DNA of 64,000 nt from Octopus sinensis (Eukaryota): NCBI RefSeq assembly GCF_006345805.1, contig NC_043017.1, positions 24,614,001-24,678,000 on the forward strand, read 5' to 3'. The notes below the pieces were generated by a model. That model made no database searches. It saw only the letters and a list, made by a program, of their open reading frames with translations, and was not told the origin of the DNA. Positions 7,005-62,204 of the stretch are shown one piece after another. Position numbers and translations under genes: made by a program. Within the stretch, counting starts at the first letter, position 1. The number at the start of each line of letters is the position of its first letter.

Positions 7005-7109
7005 ATGGTTGACAGCCAGTGCACAGTTAAAGAATTAGATCTATGGATTAAACAGTTATATGAATGTAACCGACTCTCTGAGACTCAAGTGAAAACATTA
7101 TGCGAAAAA
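7005..7109 (+). CDS. PPP2C-like: PP2A-C copy 1 exon 1
   Basis: [35 protein letters not shown], followed by GTAAAT donor. Confidence 0.93.
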
Positions 7110-10400: not shown

Positions 10401-10575
10401 AGTTGGATGTTTGTATTTTGTAATGTTACCATGGCGTTAGGCTGAACAATGCCTTGTGAGGGAAATTAGTGGATGGAAACTGCAGAAACCTGATGTATGC
10501 ACATACATATGTTTGTGTGTTTATATATATGTATATATATATATATATCTATGTATATATGTATATGTATGTATG

Positions 10576-10615
<40 letters not shown>

Positions 10616-12051
10616 TTATCGTTCTTTAACGTCTGCCTTCCATGGTAGCATGGATTAGATGGTTTCAAAAGAGCCGGCCAGGCTGAAACCCGCACCAGAC
10701 TTCTGTGACAGTTTTGGCAGGATTTTTACAGCTGGATGCCCATCCTAACACCAGCCTCTATATATAGGCTCAGACATTGCTGTGTGGTCGGGAGCTTGCT
10801 TCCCAACCACATGGTTCTGGGTTCAGTCCCACTGTGTGATACCTTGAGCGAGTATCTTCTCCTATAGCTTCAGGCCAAGTAAAGCCTTGTGAGTGGATTT
10901 GGCAGATAGAAACTGAAAGAAGCCCACCATATATATATTTGTATCTGTGTCTCTCCCAATCACCACTTAACAACTGATGTTGGTACGTTTACATCCCTGT
11001 AACTTAACAGTTCAGCAAGAGAGATCAATATATGTTCCAGTACTTGAAAAAAATAAGTTATGGAGTCAATTCATTTGACTAAAATTCTTCAAGGCAGTGG
11101 GGCCACAAACTAATGACTGAAACAAGCGAAAGATAAAAGATATATCATCATCATTGTTTAACGTCTGCTTTCCATGCTGGCATAGGTTTGACGGTTTGAC
11201 TGAGGACTGATGGCTGCACCAGGCTCCAATCTGATCTGGCAGAACTTCTACAGCTGGATGCCCTTCCTAACGCCAACCACTCTGAGAATGTAGTGGTGCT
11301 TTTACGTGCCACTGGCACAAGGGCCAGTCAGGCAGTACTGGTGACAGCCACACTCAAATGGTGTTTTTTATGTGCCACCTGCACAGGAGCCAGTCTAGCG
11401 GCACTGGCAACGACCTTGCTCGAATGTTGTTTTTCACATGTCACCGGCACAAGTGCCAGTAAGGTGACGCTAGTAACGATCACACTTGAATGGTACTTTT
11501 TATGTGCCACCGGCACGGGAGCCAGCAGCCCTGGCAACGATCACACGCAGATAGTGCTTTTAACATTACACTGGTTGGGTGCCAGTCATGCGATGCTGTC
11601 ATCGGCCACATCAGTGAATTTGATTTTGCTTGTGATTTCACTTGCCTCAACAGGTCTTTGCAAGCAAAGTTTAGTGTCCAGCGAAAGAAAGGTACATATA
11701 AGTAGGCTGGTTACACCACTGGCATAGGCCACAGATTATGGTCTCACTTGGCTTGTCAGGTCTTCTCAAGTACAGCATATTTCCAAAAGTCTTGGTCACA
11801 AGTCATTGCTTTGGTGAGGCCCAATGTTTGAAGGTCATATATATCTTATATATATTAAATGTACAGAAAACAAAAAACAACGACAGGTAAGGTAACAAGT
11901 TGATGTACTAGCTTGATGCTCAGGAAGAATGGAAAAGTCTTTGATATTTTGAGCCTATGCTCTTCAACAGAAAGGGATGAGTGGAAAAAATGGAGAGAGA
12001 CAGGTAAAAAATGTGTTGGGATTAACAGTTTAACATATTGAAATGTGTATG

Positions 12052-20800: not shown

Positions 20801-22025
20801 AAACAGATGTAAGAAAATGATGATGTGTATATATAGATATGACGGATTCTTCCGTCAAAGATGACATATGGGCATTCAACTTTTTGCTGCTTGTTTCTCT
20901 GAAGACTGTCAGAATGATGTGGACACCTCTGATGAGAAGCCAATAAGATTTGAAAATCAGTTAAGGTTTATTATTTTTTTCAGTCTGCAGAGAAAAGGCT
21001 AAAATTAGCCCTGTTTATAATTATGCCATATGTTATATATATAGGGATCTAATGCGCTTGGCTTAGATTTCCCTTGGTGTCTGCCCAGGTCGGAGCAATC
21101 TCAAGATTAATCAGCCGAAATTGCGAAGATGATCCGGTTCTTGACTGATAACTGAGGGCTTTGAATGTCCCGTCCTGTGGTTCTTGTGTCGTCTTCTAGG
21201 TGTTTCACGTTCTTGTCCCAGTTTGTATATATTTTTTACTTTTTACATATATATATATATATATATATATGCAATCACATGTATGTATATATGAATGAAT
21301 AAATTATTTGCCATGTTGTTACTTGTTTAATAAATATTGTTTATTTAGTATTGTTTGTTACAGTTGTCTTCATATTTTTAGTTTTTATTGATGCTATAGT
21401 TTAGGTAATCCGAAGCCACCTCGGTAACTTTGTCGACTGTTTATTTATTAATTTGTTCTTTTTTACTTATCTCTCTTTTGTAGGCTCAAGAAATTTTATC
21501 CCAAGAATCTAACGTGCAGCAAGTAAAATGCCCAGTGACAGTATGTGGGGACATTCACGGCCAGTTCCATGATTTGATGGAACTTTTCAGCATTGGCGGT
21601 CGAATCCCAGACACGAATTACCTTTTCATGGGAGATTATGTTGACAGAGGATACTATTCAGTTGAAACCATAACACTGCTTGTTGCTTTAAAGGTACGTC
21701 TTTATAGGTGCAGGCGTGACTGGGTGGTAAGAAGTTTGCTTCCCAACCACATAGTTCCAGGTTCAGTTCCACTGTGTGGTGCCTCAGGTAAGTGTCTTCT
21801 ACGGTAGTTTCATGCCAACCAAAGCCTTGTGAGTGGATTTGGTAAATGGAAACTGAAAGAAGCCCAGGAGTGGCTGTGTGGTAAGTAGCTTGTTTACCAA
21901 CCACATGGTTCTGGGTTCAGTCCCACTGCGTGGCACCTTGGGCAAGTGTCTTCTACTATAGCCTCGGGCCGACCAAAGCCTTGTGAGTGGATTTGGTAGA
22001 CAGAAACTGAAAGAAGCCCGTCGTA

Positions 22026-22064
<39 letters not shown>

Positions 22065-25000
22065 TTGTCTCCCTAGCATTGCTTGACAACCGATGCTGGT
22101 GTGTTTATGTCCCCATCACTTAGCGGTTCGGCAAAAGAGACCGATAGAATAAGTACTGGGCTTACAAAGAATAAGTCCCGGGGTCGATTTGCTCGACTAA
22201 AGGCGGTGCTCCAGCATGGCCGCAGTCAAATGACTGAAACAAGTAAAAGAGAGTATATGTGTGTCTGTGTTTGTCACTCACCACCACTTGACAACCAGTG
22301 CTGGTGTGTTTATGTCCCCATAACTTAGTGGTTCGGCAAAAGAGACCAATTAAATAAGTACCAGCCTTTTAAAAAAATTAATACTGGGGTCGATTTGATT
22401 GACTAAAAACTCTTCAAGTAAAAGATAAAAGATACGGAACAACTAAGTGCAGATAGGAAGGAAAGCCATGCAGCTTCAAGAATCAGTTTACATAAGCGCT
22501 TTAGGGCGTGCTACTCTTCCTCCCGATCTTGTCACACAAAAAAAAAATGCAATCATGAATGTATGAGGGGGTGCTGAAAAGTTCCTGACTTTAAGGGTAT
22601 TGCAAAAGACCTGGTTGGTGGCCCAATCTTCTGATTTCTTTTACAAGGTTTAGAAAAACTGAAGAACTGCTGCAATAAGTGTGTGAATCTGAGAGAGAAA
22701 TATATAAATATATTCAATAAAGTCATAATTAACTGATCCTCCTGTATTTTCTTTTACCCAAAGATAGGAATTTTTCAACACCCTCTTGTGTATACATGCA
22801 TACATACATGTGCTTGAGGTGACCTATTGAGTCAAGAACATCAACAGCAGCCGTTCAAGAATTTGGACCTGGAGATCTCCATTTCCAGCGACTTCGAGGG
22901 CCACCTCCCAGTGGTGTCGGGCGTCAACGAAGAACCCTCGACTACAACAAGACAACCAAAGTTTTTTTTTCCCAAGGTCTGGGGTCTCCCACCCCTAAGC
23001 CCTAGGCCATCATTTAATCACCCTTACCCGTCTTGTTGCTTAACAACAACAACAACATCAATATCAAAATCAAATCAAATGGAAATTGTGGTTGTGAACC
23101 CCGTGCCAGTAGTACATAAAAAGCACCATCAGCACATGGCCGATACCAGTGCCGCTTTGACTGGCTTCCATGATAAAAAGCACCATCTGATCATAGTCGA
23201 TGCCAGCTCCTCTGGCTCCTGTACTGGTGGCACGTAAAAAGCATCCACTACACTCTTGGAGTGGTTGGCGTTAGGAAGGGTATCCAGCTGTAGAAACACT
23301 GCTAGATCAGATTGGGGCCTGGTGCAGCCTCCTACCTTCCCAGACCTCAGTCAAACCGTCCAACCCATGCCAGCATGGAAAATGGACATTAAACGATGAT
23401 GATGATATGCACATGCACATACATACACTTATGAGGGGGTGCTGAAAGGTTCCTGGTGTTAAAGGTATCGTGAAAGGCCTGTTGGAGGCCTGACCTTTCA
23501 AGTGCTTTTACAGGGCTTAGAAAAAGTGAATAGTGAATCCGAGAAAGAAATATATTGAATAAAATCATAATTAGCTGAGCTTCCTGTATTTTTTTTTTTA
23601 CTCAAAGCCAGGAACTTTTTAGCACCCATTCGTGTGTGCTTGTGTCTCCTTGAATTGACAAGTTTCAACATCAGACTATCTATCTATCTATCCGCTCAGT
23701 CGAAGTCGACTTTCGGTTACTCGATGGATCAGTGTCCTCCACTCAGTTCTATCCTGGGCCGCTTCTTTCAGACTGGCTATGTCCATTCCAGTATCACTCT
23801 TGATGGTGTCAAGCCAGCGGGTTCTTGGTTGGCCTCTTCCTCTCTTGCCACTGACCATTCCGAGCATGATGTCCTTCTCCAGGGATTTTCTCCGCATAAT
23901 ATGACCAAAATATGCCAATCTATGCTTGGTGATCCAAGCTTCCAGCGACAGTTTCAGCTTGATCTGGTTAAGAACTTCTCCATTGGTGAGCCTCGCTGTC
24001 CATGGAATCCGTAAAAGTCTTCTCCAACACCAAAGCTCGAATGCATTAATCCTCTTCAACATCAGACAATCAGTTGAATTCATTTCCAGTATTCTGCAAA
24101 GAAAAAAAAATTGTGCTTGTTAAAGCCATATCTGTATATTAATAGAAATGTTGTTAAACAAGACCACAAACTACTATGAGAATGGAGAATGATATTGTCA
24201 GGTTGTAGCTTTATTGTGAGAGCATCTAATTCAGATGTAACAAAATTGTTCTGCGAAATATTTCATATTTCTTTATGTCTCCTTTTTAATGTTTCTTTTT
24301 TTGTCTCTTTTTTGATATGTTTCTTTTTTGACACTTGTGAACAATTTTGCTGTAAATCAAATTTTCAGTGTTTTTGTTCCCAAATACTCCGGTTTTGCCA
24401 CTTAAAACTGTAAAAACCATGCCTGTTTATTCATAAAAATGTTGTTAAACTTTTTTCTCTTCCAACAGGTCAGATATAAAGACAGAATAACTATACTTCG
24501 AGGAAATCATGAAAGTAGACAGATTACCCAAGTTTATGGATTTTATGATGAATGTTTGAGGAAGTATGGGAATGCTAATGTTTGGAAATTTTTCACAGAT
24601 CTCTTTGATTTTCTTCCTCTAACAGCATTAGTAGACGAAGAAGTAAGTTTGATTTCTTCTTGCTGCTTTGCAGATTGCTTTTGTACTGCTTAGAGATTTG
24701 TTAAACCTAATTTTTTTTCATCATCATCTGGTTGTGCTTATTCTACAGATTGCCATGGTGTGTTCTTCCCAGTCATGTCATTGCATGTTGTAGGTCTTCT
24801 CGGGTGCACTCAGAGTCCTTGCATAGTTGCTTACCTATGCGGCAGGTATTTAAAGGGAGAAATTTGATAAGACAGTCAGTCACCGGCTGACACTCGCTGA
24901 CGATACATCGAAGAGGCCAGGGAACAGAAGAAAGAAGACATGCACCCAACACCAGAGCTGAAGACACCTCCGAAAGGGGGGAGGGCCCGCCACGTCAAAA

Positions 25001-28000
25001 TGGTAGAGGAGTAGGGGCCGAAACCCGATGTGGTTCCTCCTGATGATGTCTTGAGCTAACTGGATCCTATAAAGGAGCTGTTGTGGTAGCAGACCACGAA
25101 ACACGGTTGTAATTCCTGTGGTCTACTGATATTTGCATGCCCATGCTTGAGTTCTCAGAGTAGAACACTGCTGATGACCTCATCCTTTGCTTTCCAACAA
25201 AACTTAGTGATGATGCAGTCACGTTACATACTGTTTAGTTAAAAGGAAATGTTATTTTTACAATATTTTATTAGTTAAACTTTAATATTTAGCACTCATG
25301 TTCTTGTTTCAGTCTTTAGACTGTGGCCATGCTGGGGCACCACCTTGAAAAATTTTCAGTCGAATGAATTGACCCTAGTACTTATTTTTGTTAAGCTTGT
25401 TACTTATTCTGTCAGTCATTTTTGTCAAACTGCTAGGTTACAGTGACGTAAACACACCAACACCAGTTGTCCAGCAGTGGTGGGGGACAAATAAAACATG
25501 AAGACATGCATACACACACAAACACATACATGTTTCCATCTACCAAATCCACTCACAAGGCTTTGTTCAGCCCGAGGTTATAGTAGAAGCTACTTGTTCA
25601 AGGTGCCACACAGTGGGACTGAACCCAGAACCGTGTGGCTGGGAAGCAAGCTTCTTACCACACAGCCTCGCCTTCACCTAGTTAATAAAGAATCGTTTTA
25701 CTTTTTCTTTATTGGCCAAAGAACAAGATCCAAGATCTGCTTTATGGGGGGGAAAATACAGAATAAAATATTTTCTCAAAAATACGAAAATATACCACTA
25801 GTGATGCATATGGCAGCTGTGTGAAGTTTACAATGAACCACCAGTGGTACCTGTTGCAGTTGATGGGATCTATTCAGTTTGACCGGCATTTTTTTCTAGT
25901 GGTGTCATATGAAATTGTCACCCATAATTATGACCCTAGTATCGATCTATGGCATTTCAATCTGTTTTAGGTTTAGGGGTGGAGGGAAGGGTATCTTTTT
26001 TTCTTCAGAAATGTAAATAAACCCAATCTGTTTCTTAAACGAGGGACATATTCATACGGCACAGAATGTTTTCACTTCAATAGACGTCACTGATTGGTTG
26101 AAATTGCAGAAATTGAAGAAAGAACACAACAAATATCTTACAAACTATAGAATTTTCTCAATAAAGCCAAGAGAAAAAGATGTTTTATTAACACATTCTA
26201 CCAGTATACGAAGTTTAAAATTGTTTAGTTACATGGAAATTATTTTAAAAAACTGTCAGTCAAAGTGAAAAGATCCAGTTGCTGTTATAATCTTGTGTAC
26301 ATTCTTCTAAGACTTGCAGTATTTCTTTATTATCTTTGAACACTTGTAAACTTTCTGAGTCTTTCTCTCTTGTTTTTTTCTTTACAGATATTTTGTTTAC
26401 ACGGTGGATTATCCCCTTCAATTTACAACTTGGACAACATAAATACCTTGTTCAGAAAACAGGAAATACCACATGAAGTATGTGTAAATTTATATTGGTT
26501 TCAAATTTTGGCACTGGCTAGCAGTTTCGGGGGGGGGGGGTAGGTAAGTCAGTTACATTGACCTCAGTATTCAATTGGTACTTATTTTATTGGCCCTTAA
26601 AGGATAAAAAGCAAAGTCAACTTTGGCAGAATTTGAACTCAGAACTTAAAGGCAAGCAAAATACCACTAAGAATTTTACCTGGCTTCCTAACGATTCTGC
26701 CACTTCACAGCATTTATTATCATCATCATCATCATTTGATGTTTGCTTTCCATGCTGGTATAGGTCAACAGGAGTTGGCCTGGCAGAAGACGGCATCAGA
26801 TGTCTGTGTCTATTTTGACATGGTTTTTACAGCTGGATGCCCTTCCTAACACCAACCATCCCACAGAGTGGACTGAGTGGTTTTTACATGAAACCAGCAC
26901 AGGCGAGGTCAGATCCTTTCTTCCATAAGCACAAGGGCTGAAATTTTGTGGGAAGGGTCCAGTCAATTACATCAATCCTAGTACTCAATTGGTACTTATT
27001 TTATCAATCCCAAAAGGATGAAAGGCAAAGTTGATCTGGGCAGAATTTGAATTCAGAATGTAAATACAGACAGAATACTGCTAAGCATTTTGCCTGGTGT
27101 GCTAATGCTTCTGCCAGCTCACTTCCTTTATGTATCTCTCTTTATATAAATGGCAGTTTGTCTGCGTGTTTCTGTGTGTCTGTTTGCTTGTACCCTCACC
27201 CTGAAACTTGACACACACATAGCCCAATGTCATAATTCAAAACTAACGCAGCGAAAATTTTGAAAAGTTCACCCAGTTCTGAAAAAAATCGATAAATTCG
27301 ACATGGGGTCGAGAATCAGAAACACAAACCGCAAACTGTCTAGGGGACGCAACTCCACCTTTTTTTACTCAAAAAAAATTTACCATCATTTTTTCCCATT
27401 TTTTTGCTATTTTGTGGCTATAACTCTCTAAAAATGCTTTATAGTTATTTCCCTTACAAACCTGAGCAACGCCGGGCGATACTGCTAGTAACATATATTG
27501 CTACTTGTTTTCAGTCATCATCATTATCACATCCACTTTCTCATGCCTGCATGGGTTAGATAGAATCTATTGAGGTAGAATTCCTACAGTCAGATGCTCT
27601 TCTTGGCTCGAAACCAGGTGATATTTCTTGATAGCCAGATATGTTTCATATGGAAGACTGGTGATGGTGGTGGTGGTGGTGGTGGTGGTGGTGGCAGTGG
27701 CAGAAAAACAAAGATACAAACACACACATGTACACACACTGACATATGTGATGGGCTTCCTTTTCAGTTTCCATCTACCAAATCCACTCACATAGCTTGC
27801 TTGGCCCATGACTATATTAGAAGAAGGTACCATGCTGTGGGATTGAACTTGAAACTACATGTTTGGGAAGCAAGTGTCTTAATCACATTGCTACATCTGC
27901 ACATTTTTTTCTTCTTTTTTTCTACAACTCACTGTGGGATACAATGAACCATACACCCATCAATCTAGAAATTCTGGAAAGGAAACGGGACTGGAGTGGT

Positions 28001-30801
28001 TAAACTCTGAAGCATAGGTTCTCAACCAGAGTCAATGTAACCCTTAGGGGTCCACATAAGATTTTGTGGATAAAATTCATATGCAATAAATTGGTTACAC
28101 TTCTACAATAAACAAAATATCTCAACAGTTTTTATTTATACAATTCTTAATATCTAATTATAAAAATATAAAATATATTCTTTTTTTTTTACGTGGAATG
28201 GCTGGGAAGGCCCATGTGAGTAAAATAGGGATCAAAGGGGTTCATAGATAAAAACTGGTTGAGAACCACTGCTTTAACCCTTTAGCATTTAAACCGGCTA
28301 TATCCGGCCAAAAGTATTCTGCCTGTTTTATGTTCAAACTGGCCAGATCTGGTCTCTCACACCAACCCTACATATATCGTTTTAAAAATTAACAGCTACC
28401 TCATTAAAATCTCATAACTACAAGATAATGTATGATTAGTTCAAAACAATTAGGATAAAAAAGCATTAATTTTGGCAGAATAATGCAAACACTAAAGGGT
28501 TAAAGAGACCTTCAAGTAGAATTGCAAAACAACGGTTAGACTGGCAACCTGAAGGAAAGAGAGAAGTTGGATAATCTAAGAAAACCTGGAAAGGATGCAT
28601 GGAGCATGAAACGAAAACGGTTTCTCTCTCTTGGTCTGAAATCAAGGAGGGAATCCAAGATTGCATCCACTGGCATGAAATGGTCATAGCTCTTTGCTCC
28701 TTACAGAGTAATGTGGACTAACTAACTATAATGCACTGTAAACATGAAGCTAAATATACAGAAATTCTTTTTCAGGGTCCAATGTGTGATCTTCTTTGGT
28801 CTGATCCCGGTACACACAACGGTTGGAGCCTGTCACCGCGAGGCCTTGGTTACACATTTGGCAAATGTATTTCAGAACTGTTCTGTTACTCAAATGGTCT
28901 TTCCCTTATATCTCGTGCTCACCAGTTGGCCATGGAGGTAATTATAATTTCCCTTGTTTCTATATAGTTTGCTCTTAATTCATGCAGAATCATCATCATC
29001 ATTTAGCATCCGCTTTCCATGCTAGCATGGGTTGACGGTTCGACTGGGGATCTGGGAAGCCAGAAGGCTGCACCAGGCCCAGTCTGATCTGGCAATGTTT
29101 CTACGGCTGGATGCCCTTCCTAACGCCAACCACTCCGTAAGTGTAGTGGTGCTTTTTACGTGCCACCTGCACAGGGACCACAGGAGGCTGGCAAACAGCC
29201 ACGATCAGTTGGTGCTTCTTACGTGCCACCGGCACAGAAGCCAGTCAAGGCGGCGCTAGCATCGGCCACATTCGGATGGTGCTTTTTACGTGCCACCGGC
29301 ACAGAAGCCAGTCAAGGCAGCGCTGGCATCGGCCACGTTCGGATGGTGCTTTTTACATGCCACCGGTACAGAAGCCAGTCAAGGCGGCGCTGGCATCGGC
29401 CATGTTCGGATGGTGCTTTTTACGTGCCAATCTGAAACCTTTCGAACTTTTGCGAGGATTTTGATATTTTTAAAGGGCCATTTTTTTGTCTTAGTTATTT
29501 CAGTCATTAGATTGCAGCCTTGCTGGGGCACCTCCTTGGAGAATTCTTTAGTCGAATGAATCGACCCCAATACTTATTTTTTTAAAACCTGCAACTTAGT
29601 CTATCATTCGCTTTTGCTGAGCTGCCAAGTTATGGAGACGTAAAAACACACTAGCACCTGTTGTCGAGCAATAGTGGGGTACAAACACAGACACCCAAGG
29701 CTTCTTTCAGTTTCCATCTACCAAATCCAACTCTCAAGGCTTTGGTCAGCCTGAGGCTATAGTAGAAGACACTTGCACAAAGTGCCATGCAATAGGACTG
29801 AACCTGGAACCATATGGTTGGGAAGCCAGCTTGTGCCTTTTTTTTATTTAAATTTTGATTAATGTCAATCATTTAATTTCTGTAATTGATTTACAAGATT
29901 CTTGAGTTGAACTTGGGTGTTGAAACAGATTTTGTCATATTTTGGGAGGATCATTATGCCAATAATAAACACATGCACTGGTTGTATTTCACCTCTTTAT
30001 TATTTATTTGTCAATAAACTATTTAATTTTTCTTTAATGAAACATCAGTTGATAACGTCCACCATTTAAGGGTTGATCAATTATTCTCTCTTTCTCTCAC
30101 ACACACACACAAACATAATTGTTAAAATAAATAGGAAAAAAATTACAAAAGCAGTTTATTCTCTTCCACAGGGTTACAATATGTGTCATGACAACAATGT
30201 AGTGACAGTGTTTAGTGCTCCAAATTATTGCTACCGATGTGGTAACCAAGCAGCCATCATGCAAATTGAAAGTGGCTCTAAATATTTCTTGTAAGTGAAT
30301 ATTATTATTATTATTATATTTTTTCCTTCTTTCTTCAAATTTTCTTCCGTTTCTCGCCGAGTGTTTTCTATACACCTAGGGCAGAGAAGGGCATTATTGT
30401 ATGCATTCCCAGATTTCACGTGCAAATTCACAGATAAAATATGTATTTAAAAATTAATAAATAAATAAATTCATGGATGGATGTTATTTTCACAGCGATA
30501 GTGCTCTTCTTAGTACATGAGCCATTCCAGTTAACACGATTTTTTGCACTTCCTGTAGGAATGGTAAGCCTGGAATCATTTTCAAATAGGTTTCAGTACC
30601 TTTTTTTATCATTCCTAGAGATCCTACGATCACTGGTACTGTAGTCGCCTTGAGATGCCACATTTTTTCAATTTCTATTAGCAGGTCTTTATATTTACTA
30701 ATCTTGTCAAATTCTTTCGCCGCTATATTGTGATCACAGGGAATACTAATGGCAATTAATAAACACATCCTTTTTGTCTGATCTTTTATAATAATATCCA
30801 G

Positions 30802-30874
<73 letters not shown>

Positions 30875-31632
30875 CTTTGTAAGACAGTGTAGGTAAAAAT
30901 GTACCAGAGTTGTTAGTCATCTGTCAAGTCACAACAAGGACCTCAGACAGATAATACTTTCCTTAAGATGTGCGCTGCGCCCAATAAGGGCTGCTGTTTG
31001 CAAGACATCAATCTTGCATGGGATTTCCAGTTGCCCTAAGAAGTCTTGAAGTTTCAATGGGACTGAGCCCAATGCTCCAATCGCCAATTATCTTTTACTT
31101 GTTTCAGTCATTAGACTGTGGCCATTCTGGGGCAGTCTCTTGAAGAATTTTAGTCAAATGAATTGATCCTGGTACTTTTTTTAAAGCTTGGTACTTATTT
31201 TATCACTCTCTTTTGCCAAACTGCTAAGTTATGGGGACATAAACAGCCCAACACCAGTTATCAAGTGGTGGTGGCAGGGGAGACACATAGATACACACAT
31301 ACACACACACACACACATGCATGACAGGCTTCTTTCAGTTTCCATCCACCAAATCCACTCACAAGGCTTTGGTCTTCCTAAGACTCTAGTAGAAAACATT
31401 TAACCAACATGCCACACAGTGTGATTGAACCCAGAACCATATGGCTGGGAAGGAAGCATCTTGCCACACAACCACCTACATTTGTTTGTGTGTTTGTTTG
31501 TTTGTTTTTGTTAATTAGAAATACTGAAACAAAATCTGTTTATTCCATTTATTTTTCAGCTTACAATTTGATCCGGCTCCCGTGAAAAGAAAACCAAATT
31601 CAGATCACCCAGTTCCAGATTATTTTCTTTAA
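7005..31632 (+). CDS. PPP2C-like: Serine/threonine-protein phosphatase 2A catalytic subunit, divergent tandem paralog (copy 1), complete, 310 aa
   Basis: join(7005..7109, 21484..21693, 24469..24642, 26388..26477, 28776..28937, 30172..30290, 31560..31632) = 933 nt, open frame, all GT-AG. Exon sizes 105/210/174/90/162/119/73 match PPP2CA structure. Motifs [38 protein letters not shown] and C-terminal DYFL* are present. Confidence 0.96.
9226..10240 (-). mobile_element. CRE/R2-superfamily (RLE endonuclease) non-LTR retrotransposon C-terminal remnant, interrupted by a hAT MITE
   Basis: Frameshifted peptides [60 protein letters not shown]...NA.SILAS. Confidence 0.7.
9289..9520. mobile_element. hAT-type MITE with 8-bp TSD
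   Basis: TIRs CAGTGGTTTTCAA...TTGAAAAGCACTG; perfect TSD CTATGATC at 9281-9288 and 9521-9528; internal ~31-bp tandem duplication. Confidence 0.85.
12390..12560 (+). mobile_element. Penelope-like element RT/linker remnant
   Basis: [22 protein letters not shown]...[13 protein letters not shown] resembles the Penelope N..A..Y..AL..SG..E.....R.RKIIWFNPPY region. Confidence 0.45.
13000..13830 (-). mobile_element. RTE-type LINE endonuclease remnant (highly decayed)
   Basis: Fragmentary peptides such as DSDDMTK and WSTNDG; many stops. Confidence 0.4.
14746..14813. repeat. Degenerate (CCCTAA)n-like tract
   Basis: TAACCCCAGCCCTAACTCTAACTTTAACCTTAACCCTAGACCCTAGCCCTATACCCTAACCCTAACCC. Confidence 0.7.
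19095..19377. repeat. Long imperfect inverted repeat (about 120-bp arms, 36-nt spacer)
   Basis: 19095-19216 is the reverse complement of 19253-19377, for example ACATCTGGACAGTTAGGTGATA / TATCACCTAACTGTCCAGATGT and GGTCATTCGAAGTTTTCTTTCC / GGAAAGAAAACTTCGAATGACC. Confidence 0.9.
19386..19782 (-). mobile_element. tRNA-derived octopus-type SINE (young copy)
   Basis: Reverse complement of the copies at 21866 and 35442; Pol III B-box-like GGTTCAGTCCC head. Confidence 0.85.
21484..21693 (+). CDS. PPP2C-like: PP2A-C copy 1 exon 2
   Basis: [70 protein letters not shown]; TAG acceptor, GTACGT donor. Confidence 0.97.
21866..22251 (+). mobile_element. tRNA-derived octopus-type SINE (young copy)
   Basis: GGAGTGGCTGTGTGGTAAG...GGTTCAGTCCC...GCACCTTGGGCAAGTGTC...AAACAAGTAAAAGAG. 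Dozens of older relatives occur throughout the window. Confidence 0.85.
23677..24054 (-). mobile_element. 5'-truncated RTE (BovB-like) LINE with 13-bp TSD
   Basis: Open frame [21 protein letters not shown]...[15 protein letters not shown]...[14 protein letters not shown]; (GATA)n tail; TSD TTCAACATCAGAC at 23664-23676 and 24055-24067. Confidence 0.9.
24469..24642 (+). CDS. PPP2C-like: PP2A-C copy 1 exon 3
   Basis: [58 protein letters not shown]; CAG acceptor, GTAAGT donor. Confidence 0.97.
25865..26278. mobile_element. MITE with imperfect TIRs
   Basis: GGATCTATTCAGTTTGACCGGCA ... TGTCAGTCAAAGTGAAAAGATCC. Confidence 0.6.
26388..26477 (+). CDS. PPP2C-like: PP2A-C copy 1 exon 4
   Basis: [30 protein letters not shown]; CAG acceptor, GTATGT donor. 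Confidence 0.95.
27135..27488 (+). mobile_element. Non-autonomous Helitron
   Basis: Inserted between A and T; 5' TC(TCTCTTTATATA); 3' hairpin CCTGAGCAACGCCGGG about 11 nt before the terminal CTAG. Confidence 0.8.
28278..28499. mobile_element. piggyBac-type MITE
   Basis: TTAA|CCCTTTAG...CTAAAGGG|TTAA. Relatives at about 1640-1838, 32650-32880, 58816-59012 and 63200-63430. Confidence 0.75.
28776..28937 (+). CDS. PPP2C-like: PP2A-C copy 1 exon 5
   Basis: [54 protein letters not shown]; CAG acceptor, GTAATT donor. Confidence 0.96.
28993..29430. repeat. Abundant (CAT)n-tailed interspersed repeat with three internal 67-bp tandem units (29211-29411)
   Basis: Unit GGTGCTTTTTACGTGCCACCGGCACAGAAGCCAGTCAAGG...TTCGGAT starts at 29211, 29278 and 29345. 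Same family at about 11145-11730, 16330-16535, 23100-23400, 45250-45425 and 62820-63008. Confidence 0.85.
30172..30290 (+). CDS. PPP2C-like: PP2A-C copy 1 exon 6
   Basis: [39 protein letters not shown] plus 2 nt; CAG acceptor, GTAAGT donor. Confidence 0.96.
30317..30802 (-). mobile_element. R4/Dong-like RLE retrotransposon 3' end between (TAA)n tracts
   Basis: [22 protein letters not shown]...[29 protein letters not shown]...HVLRRALSL* (decayed PD-D motif), then 3' UTR and a (TAA)n tail. Confidence 0.8.
30803..30873. repeat. (ATT)n microsatellite
   Basis: About 23 uninterrupted units. Confidence 0.95.
30875..31090 (-). mobile_element. Second, distinct R4/Dong-like RLE 3' end
   Basis: [32 protein letters not shown](+1 shift)[10 protein letters not shown]; its 3' UTR ends at the (AAT)n tract. 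Confidence 0.7.
31560..31632 (+). CDS. PPP2C-like: PP2A-C copy 1 exon 7
   Basis: (F)[26 protein letters not shown]; TTTTTCAG acceptor. Confidence 0.95.
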
Positions 31633-33216: not shown

Positions 33217-34515
33217 GAGAGTGTTCCAAGATACATCTCATAAATGATCCTGAAATATATATCGTCAGTGATGTTTCTGGGATCTCAGGATGTTTTAAAT
33301 GTTTATATGCATGTGTGTGTGAGAAAACAAATATAAGCCAGAGAGGAAGCAAACAAACCATTTGGTATCACATGAATTTTCTTTTTCTCTTGCTTCTTTT
33401 AATTATTTTTCCTCTCTTGCCTCTCTTAATCTATTTCTTTTCTTTGTTTAAAGAGTGTCACCCAAAGCATTAAATTCTCTTCTGTTTCTTCTACCTCTGG
33501 TGTATTTATCTTCATTTGTACATTCTTTTGATTGTTGCATTTTTTACTTTATATTTCTATGCTTTTTCAGTTACGTTTTCATTTGCATGACTCAATGTAG
33601 TTTGTTTGTCTCTTCTTTACCTCATAATCATACTCCTGTTATTTTGATGATTTTATTTTTACCTATTTATATCCTTTTGCTATCTTAGAACGAATTGCTG
33701 CTACTTAGCAGATTGATCACATAACAACAATCCTTATATATATGTGTGTGTTTGCGTATGTAGCCCCATCTATCCATATGCACAAAGACACACTCATATA
33801 TGTATGTGTCTATATCTGTGTATGCATTATACTCAATATATGTATATACATACATACATACACACACACATATATATATATATATATGGTAAATGAATCT
33901 TTATATATATACTCCCACGCACACCCACTGAGATATATGCATTCATGTGTCTGTCTGTGTCTATATATTCAGTGTCTTTATTATTTTTTCTGTGTTCCTC
34001 AGAATACAAACTATATTTTGAAACAGTCTAGAGATAAAAACAAGAAATAATGAACAGCCATTAGTTACATCAAGATATTTTATAGGCACAAAAGATTGTA
34101 GAGTGCAAAAGTGCAGAATACAATTTTTTGTTCTTGGTGCACCAGAGATATTGGTGAACATACAGACAGCTTAATGGATATAAAGTGCTTAAGTCAGGAA
34201 CAGTAGTAGTCATGGTGATAACGGTGGTGGTGTGAGTATTGGTAGTGATAATGATATTGCTCATGGTGAGAATAATGATGATGTGGAGATGGTGACAGTT
34301 GTACTATTGCCACTACTACTACTACTACTACTACTGCTGATGGTACTGGGTGTGTGTGGAAGAGAAGGGTGTAATTTTAAAGAAAATGGCAACAGCAATC
34401 ATTAAGATTCTGTATTCAAAACAATAAAAGAATAACAATGATAAAACACATGTAAAAGCTGATTTAAAATGTATTTTCTTTTTGTTGAGTAATTGGCTCA
34501 TTACTCTCTCTCTTA

Positions 34516-36944
34516 CTCTTTTACTTGTTTCAGTCATTTGACTGAGGCCATGCTAGAGCACCGCCTTTAATCGAGCAACTCGACCCCGGGACTTATTCTT
34601 TTGTAAGCCCAGTACTTATTCTATCGGTCTCTTTTGCCGAACCGCTAAGTAACGGGGACATAAACACACCAGCATCGGTTGTCAACCAATGCTAGGGGGA
34701 CAAACACAGACATACACGCATATATATATACATATATACGATGGGCTTCTTTCAGTTTCCGTCTACCAAATCCACTCACAAGGCTTTGGTTGGCCCGAGG
34801 CTATAGTAGAAGACACTTGTCCAAGGTGCCACGCAGTGGGACTGAACCCGGAACCATGTGGCTGGTAAACAAGCTACTTACCACCCAGCCACTCCTGGTA
34901 AATTCTTTTGTCAATGAAATCCGTTTTAGTTTCAATTTTCACTTGGAAGAGATTCGCTTCCTCTGAGACAGTATCTTTGTCACCATCGCCGCCACCACCA
35001 CCACCACCATCATCATTAATATTATTATGGTGACGAGCTAGAAGATTTGCTAGTATGCCAGGTAAAAAGCTTAGCAGCATTTTGTCCATCTTTACGTTCC
35101 TAGTTAAAAATCCGTCAAGGTCAACTTCACCTAAATCTGTGAATTAGATGATCGCTTTCCAAAAATGATTCTTGATTTAGTACCATTAGAAGCGACAACA
35201 ACATGAAGTATTTGAAATGTGTTACAAGGCTTGAAACAGAATATTTAAAGGAGAATTTGACCGAAATTTTATTGCGTTCTGTTCTAATGGAATGAGTGGT
35301 GTGGAGGAATGAAAGGAGACATCAGAACTGAAAGTGATGTCACATCAAGTGGTAGGGCATTTGAACAGGGCAACAGATATGAAAAATAAGGACATAATCC
35401 CTCTGCAGGCCCTGGAAGACGGTTTTGAAGGCTAACATTCTAGGAGTGGCTGTGTGGTAAGTAGCTTGCTAACCAACCACATGGTTCCGGGTTCAGTCCC
35501 ACTGCGTGGCATCTTGGGCAAGTGTCTTCTGCTATAGCCCCGGGCCGACCAATGCCTTGTGAGTGGATTTGGTAGACGGAAACTGAAAGAAGCCCGTCGT
35601 ATATATGTATATATATGTGTTTGTGTGTGTGTGTGTTTGTCCCCCTAGCATTGCTTGACAACCGATGCTGGTGTGTTTACGTCCCCGTTACTTAGCGGTT
35701 CGGCAAAAGAGACCGATAGAATAAGTACTGGGCTTACAAAGAATAAGTCCCGGGGTCGATTTGCTCGACTAAAGGCGGTGCTCCAGCATGGCCGCAGTCA
35801 AATGACTGAAACAAGTAAAAGAGTACTGTTCCCATTATTTTGTCCAACCCCTGTATTTCAATTAAGCTTTGTGATACTAATAACCTGGTGTGGAACTCGA
35901 TATGTGTACGCTTCTGCATGAAGCATTAGTCGAGCAGTAAGAGGAAAAAAGAAATGACACAGCAATAAACGATTATCTAACAGCTGTTTCTGCTCTAGGG
36001 TGTGGTAGAGTATCAAATATTATTCAGGAGAGCACACACAGATCCTTACCGTTGTTTAAGGTTTATATTTACATGCATGCATGGGTCAGGCAGATTTTCT
36101 TCAGCTGATTGCCCTTCCTGTTACCAGCCCTCCTCTGTTTCCAAGCAAGGTAATATTTCCTCATAGCCAGACATGTTTTCATGGAAGATTGGAAATGAAG
36201 GACATTACTAGTATGACAGAGATGCTCTTTTACAATTATAAGGCTATGTGAAGACGAGACAAAACATGAACATACACACATATATCTCTCTTTTACTTGT
36301 TTCAGTCATTTGACTGCGGCCATGCTGGAGCACCGCCTTTAGTCGAGCAACTCGACCCCGGGACTTATTCTTTTTGTAAGCCCAGTACTTACTCTATCGG
36401 TCTCTCTTTGCCGAACCGCTAAGTGACGGGGACGTAAACACACCAGCATCGGTTCTCAAGCAATGCTAGGGGAACAAACACAGACACACAAACACACACA
36501 CATACATATATATATATATACATATATACGACAGGCTTCTTTCAGTTTCCGCCTACCAAATCCACTCACAAGGCATTGGTCGGCCCGAGGCTATAGCAGA
36601 AGACACTTGCCCAAGATGCTACGCAGTGGGACTGAACCCAGAACCATGTGGTTGGTAAGCAAGCTACTTACCACACAGCCACTCCTATGTGTATATTCTT
36701 TTATTCTTTTACTTCTTTCAATCATTTGACTGTGGCTGTGCTGGAGCACTGCCTTAAGAGGTTTTGAACAAATCAACCCCAGGACTTATTCTTTCTAAGC
36801 CTAGTACTTACAGCTTTATCAGGACCTAGGTTCTGCTGAATCTGTAGCAGTTACTCAGGCACTTAACTATGAGCAAGTCCAACAGAATAAGTTCATAAGA
36901 TAAGCATTTATTCCTCTATCTTCTATTTTTCCTTATATATACAC

Positions 36945-37493: not shown

Positions 37494-38381
37494 AATATAT
37501 ATATATATGTATATACATACATATAGAGACATATATGAACATATATTTACACACACATATATATAGACATATATATATATGTAAGTATGTATGTGTATAT
37601 AGATGGATAGATATACATATATATATATGCATATATACATATGTATACATACATATACATATAGACATATATATATATATATATATACATACATACATAT
37701 ACACACACACACACACATATATAGAGAGAGTTTGCTTGTGTAGATATATGAAGAACAGTAATGAGCTAGTCACCATCATTTATTTATTTCTTGATGGAGA
37801 GTTTTTTATCCCAAAATATTGAATATACAGTAAAGTGTAACCTTATTTTTCTTTTCATTTCCAATTTTCATTCTCAATGGCTTTTAAAGAACAATTTTAA
37901 TAACTCTAGTACATGATCCGTTATTCAAACTACATTATTCCAATACACAAGATGCAGGCACGGCTCTTTACTCTTTTTACTCTTTTACTTGTTTCAGTCA
38001 TTTGACTGCGGCCATGCTGGAGCACCGCCTTTAGTCGAGCAAATCGACCCCGGGACTTATTCTTTGTAAGCCCAGTACTTATTCTATCGGTCTCTTTTGC
38101 CGAACCGCTAAGTTACGAGGACGTAAACACACCAGCATCGGTTGTCAAGCAATGCTAAGGGGACAAACACAGACATACAAACATATACACACACACATAT
38201 ATATATATATATATACATATATACGACAGTCTTCTTTCAGTTTCCGTCTACCAAATCCACTCACAAGGCATTGGTCGGCCCGGGGCTATAGCAGAAGACA
38301 CTTGCCCAAGGTGCCCCGCAGTGGGACTGAACCTGGAACCATGTGGTTGGTTAGCAAGCTACTTACCACACAGCCACTCCT
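34516..38381. mobile_element. Cluster of four near-identical young SINEs: 34516-34896 (-), 35442-35823 (+), 36288-36686 (-), 37981-38381 (-)
   Basis: Direct visual alignment; CpGs retained. Confidence 0.85.
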
Positions 38382-39622
38382 GTGCCTATGTACGGCTGTG
38401 TAGTTAAGAAATGTACTTCCTAACCGCATAGTCATGAGTTCAGTCCTACTGCATGGTACCTTGGACAAATGTTTTCTATTACACCTCCAGGTCAGTCAAA
38501 GCCTTGTGGGTTGATTTGGTAGATGGAAACTTAAAAAATCTTGTCATACAGGCACAGGTGTGACTATGTAGTAAAAAGCTTGCTTTCCAACCACTTGGTT
38601 CTGGGTTCAGTCCCACTGCATGGCACCTTGAGCAAGTGTCTTCTACTATAACCTTGGGCTGACCGAAGCCTTATGAGTGGATTTGGTAGACAGAAACTGA
38701 AAGAAGCTCATCACACGTACTCATATGTATGTGTTTATGTGTGTGGGTCAGTGTTTGTCCCCACTCTCACCATCACTTGACAACCAATACTGGTGTGTTT
38801 ACGTCCCCGTAACTCAGCGGTTCAGCAAAAGAGACTGATAGAATAAGTATTAGCCTTAGAAAGAGTAAGTCCTGGGGTGGATTTGTTCAACTGAAACCCC
38901 TAAAGGCAGTGCTCCAGCATGGCCACAGTCAAATGATTGAAACAAATAAAACAATATACACACATATGTGTGTGTGTGTTTGTATCTATTACATCCCCTT
39001 TTTAAAAAGATGTTTGACTGCTATTTCTAGCAGGTCGAGCAGATGCGTAGAGAATCCGCTGTTGGCTCGAAAAATTTGGTGCATTGTGTGGAAATAAAAA
39101 AATTTGGGTTAGGGGGGGGAGGTTTACATTCGATATAGTTCAACCCCAACCTTGTCTACAGTTAACAACAACCTGCCTTGCACTACGAAGCGCTTTTAAT
39201 TTGATTTAAGATAAGCTTTTGTTAAATTAATTGTGTCTTTATACATCATATAAAGCCAATAACATACTCTTCCAATAAACTATATAATTACATCTTTCTC
39301 AAGAATTTGGGGATTTCCCGCTTCACACTTGAATTTTTATCTCCCTTTTTTCTGTGGTAAAAGTATCTCTGATCAATGCTTCTTTCATAATATCCGTGTG
39401 ATTTTTATTGGCCACAATCGAATAATGTGTCTATATTTATAACTACTTACGATGGGGAAATATATTTCTCATAGCCTATTAAAAATGAAACGACTAATTT
39501 AAATTTTAAAAAAGTTGGCCTCTTTTATTTGTGGGGAATTACATAATTATCACTTCTTTTACAGTGTTTAAATAAAATTCATGGGGGGGAAAAAAGAAGA
39601 TTGGGTTTATTTATATAGAAAT

Positions 39623-42745: not shown

Positions 42746-62204
<19,459 letters not shown>

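Follow-up and report, generated by a model that had tools for sequence, protein, structure and literature searches.

Interlocus gene conversion between tandem duplicates is known from the primate gamma-globin genes, the red and green opsins, CYP21A2/CYP21A1P, and RHD/RHCE. In vertebrates, the catalytic subunit of PP2A is encoded by a pair of genes, PPP2CA and PPP2CB, that are about 97% identical. We analyzed a stretch of 64,000 nucleotides (nt) from Octopus sinensis (contig NC_043017.1, positions 24,614,001 to 24,678,000); the term window refers to this entire stretch. It contains a tandem pair of PP2A catalytic-subunit (PP2A C) genes on the + strand, a divergent copy A and, about 31 kb downstream, a conserved copy B. 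A block consisting of the end of intron 2 and nearly all of exon 3 is far more similar between the two copies than the sequences that flank it. Very probably, this block is the product of an interlocus (ectopic) gene conversion between the paralogs, in which sequence from copy B was transferred into copy A.

The octopus locus resembles the globin, opsin, CYP21A2/CYP21A1P, and RHD/RHCE cases in several respects: a short internal block, including intron sequence and silent sites, greatly exceeds its flanks in similarity; the transfer is non-reciprocal and came from a neighbor in the same orientation; and one of the boundaries lies within a conserved exon. Unlike in those cases, the event is old (with a distance K of about 0.2) and single, not an ongoing homogenization, and the acceptor is otherwise evolving fast. 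The 5' end of the octopus tract also differs, in that it lacks homology and is accompanied by a 42-nt duplication, which is more reminiscent of template switching or end joining than of the classical end of a heteroduplex. As with PPP2CA/PPP2CB, there are two genes for the catalytic subunit, and the catalytic motifs and the DYFL tail are present in both octopus copies; unlike the vertebrate pair, the octopus pair is tandem, lineage-specific, and asymmetric. We found no literature on octopus PP2A paralogs or on this conversion. The process itself is well-known textbook biology; this instance of it appears to be undescribed.

The Gene Pair

The window consists of animal DNA that is rich in A and T and in repeats. 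Genes were located through tblastn, with human PP2A C alpha serving as probe only, and exon borders were set by the canonical splice sites, AG before and GT after an exon. The resulting models, with the roles that we propose for them, are:

7005-31632, + strand: copy A gene, from tblastn and splice sites; 7 exons, 310 amino acids (aa), intact; proposed acceptor of the conversion
7005-7109, 21484-21693, 24469-24642, 26388-26477, 28776-28937, 30172-30290, and 31560-31632, + strand: copy A exons 1-7
42746 to past the end of the window (exon 4 ends at 62204), + strand: copy B gene; proposed donor of the conversion; exons 5-7 lie outside the window
42746-42850, 53497-53706, 55838-56011, and 62115-62204, + strand: copy B exons 1-4

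For the divergence counts, exons 5-7 of copy B were taken from locus L002. The copy A model is a 100% match to the annotated 310-aa protein of O. vulgaris and O. sinensis (P0002), and positions 32746-64000, which comprise the copy B region, are 100% identical to the O. sinensis chromosome record CM016879.1. The product of copy B (P0124) is identical among O. vulgaris, O. sinensis, and O. bimaculoides, and it is one amino acid away from that of Sepia. Identity to human PP2A C alpha is 76% for copy A and about 90% for copy B (exons 1-4). The proteins encoded by copies A and B are only 79% identical to one another while copy B is almost invariant, which makes the pair strongly asymmetric.

Divergence Between the Copies by Exon

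A sequence-only reading of this stretch, made from hand counts, had proposed an old duplication with later conversion over exon 3. Its counts were reproduced exactly. The two copies differ at 31/105, 33/210, 9/174, and 30/90 nucleotides in exons 1-4, respectively, and the synonymously different codons in these exons number 9/23, 22/64, 7/56, and 14/22. The recount also bore out that the final two codons of exon 3 (EE in copy A, GQ in copy B) are its only amino-acid changes, and the GNHE motif had been placed correctly in this exon.

Silent divergence is not uniform across the exons. The proportion of synonymous sites that differ between copies A and B (pS, Nei-Gojobori) is 0.86, 0.54, 0.20, 0.95, 0.64, 0.66, and 0.75 for exons 1-7, respectively, so that exon 3 at 0.20 stands against 0.54-0.95 elsewhere. 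The shortage of silent differences in exon 3 relative to all other exons is significant (Fisher p = 9e-8), and after shuffling of the codon columns, a run with silent differences as scarce as in exon 3 was obtained with p = 1e-4. Among 4-fold degenerate sites, 3/19 differ in exon 3 vs 37/74 in the other exons (p = 0.009). For the exons of copy A other than exon 3, the proportion of nonsynonymous sites that differ from copy B (pN) is 0.05-0.30; exon 3 of copy A encodes the canonical PP2A sequence. The sequence-only reading had further held that the C-terminal half of the gene escaped the conversion. The C-terminal exons have indeed diverged, but exon 1 and most of exon 2 escaped too, and the GDYVDRG motif in exon 2 is covered by a further short tract, a probable one, described below.

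The Tract Extends into Intron 2

The low-divergence block, which we call tract T1, has the following positions:

24160-24637, + strand: tract T1 in copy A, 478 nt; the last 309 nt of intron 2 (24160-24468) and exon 3 positions 1-169 (24469-24637)
55446-56006, + strand: the stretch of copy B that corresponds to T1, 561 nt at present, with three indels relative to copy A

Intron positions 24160-24468 in copy A align with 55446-55837 in copy B, which is, apart from a few nucleotides at the 5' edge, the alignment that had been given earlier (24156-24468 with 55445-55837). The mismatch in aligned columns is 18%, and the indels amount to 19, 16, and 47 nt extra in copy B. The Jukes-Cantor distance between A and B in the intron part of T1 is 0.17-0.24, and both flanks are unalignable; immediately upstream of T1 and from 11 nt downstream of exon 3, the similarity between the copies is at the level of random sequence. 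In introns 1 and 3, in the rest of intron 2, and in the upstream regions, the copies share only dispersed repeats, in agreement with the earlier claim that the introns next to exons 1, 2, and 4 cannot be aligned. Throughout intron 2, we found no homology resuming past the transposable elements that flank T1.

Both introns are full of dispersed repeats, one of which abuts T1 in copy B. One could therefore imagine that a mobile element or high-copy repeat was inserted independently beside exon 3 twice, and that the low synonymous divergence (dS) of exon 3 is due to chance or codon bias. We consider this scarcely credible. The intron segment of T1 is not the high-copy repeat that the sequence-only reading had named as the finding to look out for: it has exactly one other copy in the window, in which true repeats have at least 20. 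In a further 165 kb of cephalopod sequence, only the orthologous or paralogous positions matched this segment. The alignment also continues from the intron into exon 3, colinear and unbroken, in both copies, and the dS deficit in exon 3 is significant alone.

The Tract in Other Cephalopods

For comparison, we used O. bimaculoides copy A (L001) and copy B (L003), the Sepia pharaonis gene (L006), and two Sepia-like cDNAs (L007 and L008). A third octopus is represented by a copy B cDNA (L004) from metatranscriptome SRR3401912, which is described only as octopus (PMC11662614).

O. bimaculoides has the same patch. In the four-way alignment, the two copy A orthologs share A-specific substitutions and indels within T1; the event therefore predates the divergence of O. 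sinensis from O. bimaculoides. This finding also bears on the quality of the assembly. Where a repeat-rich genome contains paralogs in tandem, misassembly occurs easily, and chimeric or collapsed paralogs might resemble a mosaic. However, the copies are 13-18% different across T1 and carry three indels, the independent O. bimaculoides assembly has this structure too, along with changes specific to that species, and the annotated O. vulgaris protein is identical. The probability of an artefact is, in our estimation, negligible.

The similarity of the two copies might instead have been maintained by constraint since the duplication, with no conversion at all, if T1 acted as double-stranded RNA for A-to-I editing, as a splicing enhancer, or as an intronic regulatory element. 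In coleoid cephalopods, A-to-I RNA editing is common, and the sequence around editing sites is known to be conserved. This background lends some plausibility to constraint, and so do the silent sites of copy B, which are slow overall: only 2/129 4-fold sites differ between O. sinensis and O. bimaculoides, about 3.5x slower than the introns (about 5.6%). The orthologs of the tract itself, however, do not behave as constrained sequences. In the intron tract, O. sinensis and O. bimaculoides differ at 9/283 positions in copy A and 26/338 in copy B (Jukes-Cantor distances 0.032 and 0.081, respectively), or 5.6% when pooled. The locus-wide mismatch between orthologs, over kilobases of intron, is 5-6.5%. 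Because the two values agree, T1 evolves neutrally, and the similarity between A and B reflects recent common ancestry and not constraint. The earlier argument that the intron similarity speaks against protein-level selection alone holds for the same neutral tract.

The silent sites of exon 3 give the same picture. In copy B, 7/57 silent codons of exon 3 differ from the third octopus vs 18/242 in the other exons (p = 0.28), and 17/57 differ from Sepia vs 100/241 in the other exons. Measured against the third octopus, exon 3 has the highest pS of all copy B exons, 0.19. Exon 3 of copy A has six silent changes between O. sinensis and O. bimaculoides, not below the other exons. There is no excess RNA folding of T1 (z = -0.19 in copy A and +0.87 in copy B), and no match to T1 was found in Sepia intron 2. 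The rates between orthologs largely refute constraint as an explanation, and we regard it as highly improbable.

Direction and Timing of the Transfer

Considered by itself, the pairwise pattern between A and B is symmetric, and a conversion in which copy A was written over copy B would produce it as well. This reverse direction is very unlikely. It predicts that about 45% of the silent codons in copy B exon 3 differ from the third octopus, vs the 12% that were seen (the 7/57 given above, alongside 18/242 in the other exons). Furthermore, exon 3 is a canonical PP2A sequence while the other exons of copy A carry many replacements. The distances of copy B exon 3 to its orthologs, both the third octopus and Sepia, are normal, as is typical for a donor that was left unchanged. 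Since copy B exon 3 is continuous with its orthologs and copy A exon 3 encodes the canonical protein, the direction was from B to A.

Three sites in exon 3 (positions 21, 39, and 96) have, in both orthologs of copy A, the state found in copy B of O. sinensis and O. bimaculoides; the third octopus and both Sepia-like cDNAs share another state there. No sites are in conflict with this grouping, and the supporting sites are only these three. Going by the shared derived states, exon 3 of copy A coalesces with copy B within the octopus clade, later than the branching of the third lineage. The event occurred before the split between O. sinensis and O. bimaculoides, at about 3.4x that divergence, and after the split of the third octopus lineage.

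Within exon 3, positions 3 and 120 are fixed differences between A and B, and positions 170 and 172 are both fixed and protein-changing. Copy A of O. sinensis alone differs at positions 12, 66, 102, 138, and 168, and copy A of O. bimaculoides alone at position 153. We considered a later second conversion in O. bimaculoides as the source of its smaller exon 3 distance. This scenario is unparsimonious, given that the A-type sites (3, 120, 170, and 172) and the B-type sites (12, 66, 102, 138, and 168) interleave. The latter five positions are better read as changes specific to O. sinensis copy A.

Boundaries of the Tract

Because exon 3 positions 170 and 172 are fixed A/B differences, T1 ends at or before position 169 (24637). 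Some 5 nt of exon 3 are thus left beyond the 3' end of the tract, and the EE/GQ codons fall outside it. The sequence GTAAGTTTG that follows exon 3 is identical in both copies because it is the splice-donor consensus. The 5' boundary is at 24160 in copy A and at 55446 in copy B. The elements at or near this boundary are:

24118-24159, + strand: segment X, a 42-nt partial copy of the 3' portion of T1 itself, located immediately 5' of T1 in copy A (BLAST, E = 3e-6)
24409-24450, + strand: segment X', the 3' portion of the intronic T1 that is duplicated by X; X and X' both end in AAATGTTGTTAAAC
23688-24083, - strand: C-terminal fragment of a long interspersed element (LINE) ORF2, with an open reading frame (ORF) of 131 aa, within intron 2 of copy A and about 35 nt 5' of X; it lies outside T1 and is a marker of the non-homologous flank
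55257-55440, + strand: dispersed repeat similar to a short interspersed element (SINE), in intron 2 of copy B, directly adjoining T1 on its 5' side; present in copy B of both species and not in copy A

Segments X and X' form a direct repeat with about 82-83% identity over 42 nt. X is also present in O. bimaculoides (L001 21432-21473; six-way alignment). We also looked for signs that X came from an intronic unit duplicated in tandem, but the remainder of a first unit is absent. A 42-nt duplication at a non-homologous 5' junction suggests an illegitimate or template-switch junction, or a partial duplication.

The SINE-like family has at least 20 copies in the window, for example at 25509-25676, 27732-27901, 29669-29826, 31305-31475, and 54253-54420. 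Going by its typical C-terminal tail, we take the 131-aa ORF at 23688-24083 to be from the ORF2 of an RTE-type LINE, a 5'-truncated retrotransposon.

A Probable Second Tract in Exon 2

A further patch of the same kind was detected in exon 2:

21607-21669, + strand: probable tract T2 in copy A, exon 2 codons 77-97, which include the GDYVDRG motif
53620-53682, + strand: counterpart of T2 in copy B, exon 2

In neither species does T2 contain a fixed A/B difference. It comprises 16 identical informative codons in a row (permutation p = 0.003, calculated outside exon 3). Octopus copy B differs from the Sepia-like sequences in 9-11/20 codons of T2; silent sites in T2 are therefore free to vary, and the run does not result from constraint. 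Once this run is set aside, 22/46 silent codons of exon 2 differ, a divergence on a par with that of the other exons. Between T2 and T1 lie 24 nt of exon, in which eight differences are fixed, and about 2.5 kb of intron that cannot be aligned, so T2 is a separate event or a separate patch. It is probably a second short conversion tract, of 50-65 nt.

Age of the Duplication and Silent Rate of Copy A

Sepia pharaonis has one PP2A C gene at this locus, and its direct neighbor is the minus-strand WD40-repeat gene also found next to copy A in octopus (L006 1-21120; L001 1104-9314). No second PP2A C copy was found within 10 kb at this locus in Sepia pharaonis. The protein collection that was searched contained no copy A-like proteins beyond those of O. 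vulgaris, O. sinensis, and O. bimaculoides, with the limit that many cephalopod genomes lack annotation. After copy A itself, the best match to the copy A-specific C-terminal half is at 71%. Outside exon 3, copy A is slightly nearer to octopus copy B than to Sepia, with silent differences in 82/181 and 103/182 codons, respectively (p = 0.04). The tandem duplication is probably octopod-specific. In the description of this duplication as old, old is a relative term, in view of the single Sepia gene and the speed with which copy A changes at silent sites.

Between O. sinensis and O. bimaculoides, 16/102 4-fold sites of copy A differ vs 154/2569 positions in the flanking introns (p = 5e-4), a 2.6x higher rate. 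For the same pair of species, the silent sites of copy A exon 3 differ at 6/35 vs 9/283 in the adjacent intron tract (p = 0.003). We examined micro-conversion from B to A as a cause of the high silent rate in copy A. In exon 3 this explanation fails, since the copy A changes lead away from the state of copy B.

Copy A as a Predicted PP2A Catalytic Subunit

In an alignment to human PP2A C alpha, copy A has kept all of the PPP signature motifs GDxHG, GDxVDRG, and GNHE, as well as HGG and RAHQ. Pfam domain PF00149 is precomputed for the copy A protein (P0002). Among solved structures, its best matches are PP2A C alpha chains (E = 2e-171, 573 bits), with other phosphatase types at 314 bits or less; by these structure-chain scores, copy A is nearer to PP2A C than to PP1, PP5, or calcineurin. 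In the C-terminal regulatory tail (HPVPDYFL), DYFL is kept, and a valine occupies the position equivalent to human T304 (residue 305; exon 31560-31632) in both Octopus species. Likewise in both species, the near-invariant DGQ before the LHGG motif is DEE in copy A (residues 162-163; 24637-24642).

The ratio dN/dS between the copy A orthologs is about 0.05, and reading frame and splice sites are intact in two species. Replacement changes being this rare, copy A is under purifying selection. In O. bimaculoides, exon 6 of copy A falls into an assembly gap, a run of N (L001 25459-25808), which accounts for the truncated 262-aa RefSeq model in that species. From its sequence, copy A is predicted to be a PP2A-type catalytic subunit.

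A more elaborate scenario for copy A, which we regard as unlikely though worth stating, is that of an Octopus-specific PP2A C undergoing neofunctionalization. Its GDYVDRG (exon 2) and GNHE (exon 3) segments would have been refreshed repeatedly from copy B through short conversions that selection tolerated only there, with the regulatory surfaces and the tail being kept divergent. The exon-specific silent acceleration, 2.6x the intron rate, would then have come from a further process, for instance selection acting on codon usage or a processed copy serving as conversion donor.

Other Features of the Window

The 11-kb spacer between copies A and B contains three segments of about 400 nt (34495-34909, 36288-36702, and 37962-38382) that are 88-94% alike and spaced at about 1.7 kb; they are possibly part of a tandem array of units of about 1.7 kb. 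A (TCTA)n/(TA)n microsatellite is located at 56130-56180, just 3' of copy B exon 3. Intron 1 of copy B has a long low-complexity tandem array at 44000-44550, which cross-matches arrays at 10490-10616, 47430-47560, and 60620-60860.

Discussion

The locus displays the features by which interlocus conversion is recognized: a block of low divergence that includes silent and noncoding sites, no constraint on that block, phylogenetic incongruence, and a donor that remained unchanged. The mosaic, the neutrality of the tract, the timing, and the direction all support the sequence-only proposal of conversion over exon 3 following an older duplication, and we have high confidence in a transfer from copy B into copy A.

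The following sequence of events would produce the observed pattern. The paralogs would have arisen by tandem duplication in octopods, and their divergence would have gone on to the point where introns could no longer be aligned and silent sites were nearly saturated. A break in copy A near the border of intron 2 and exon 3 may then have been repaired with copy B as the template, whereby about 480 nt of copy A would have been overwritten, namely the last 310 nt or so of intron 2 and exon 3 minus its last 5 nt. Homology within the conserved exon 3 would have resolved the 3' end. The 5' end would have been joined without homology, possibly after a template switch in which the X' region was copied twice. 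Since the transfer, the patch would have drifted neutrally, and the patch in exon 2 would be of the same character.

Several observations weigh against this interpretation or limit its precision. The 5' boundary of T1 meets a repeat in copy B and a LINE fragment with a duplication in copy A, so the original 5' extent of the tract is uncertain. Both the repair mechanism and the kind of junction at the 5' end are deduced solely from the pattern. For the placement of the event after the third octopus lineage, we depend on three sites, and the transcriptome of that octopus is recorded just as octopus. Copy A is known in two species only, and its ancestral, unconverted exon 3 has never been seen. 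In O. bimaculoides, the exon 3 pS of 0.085 is smaller than the intron K of about 0.2, with the small counts of 3 differences vs about 6 expected.

Under the conversion from B into A, the locus would be a clean and datable case of ectopic conversion in a cephalopod genome, one for which donor, acceptor, direction, and both boundaries are resolved, and for which the alternative of constraint through RNA editing, an obvious one in coleoids, can be set aside. For this pair of paralogs, trees or dS-based dating will be misleading if exon 3 and the affected part of exon 2 are included. Copy A itself is an unusual, lineage-restricted, and fast-evolving version of one of the most conserved enzymes of eukaryotes, and it may merit study of its expression and biochemistry.

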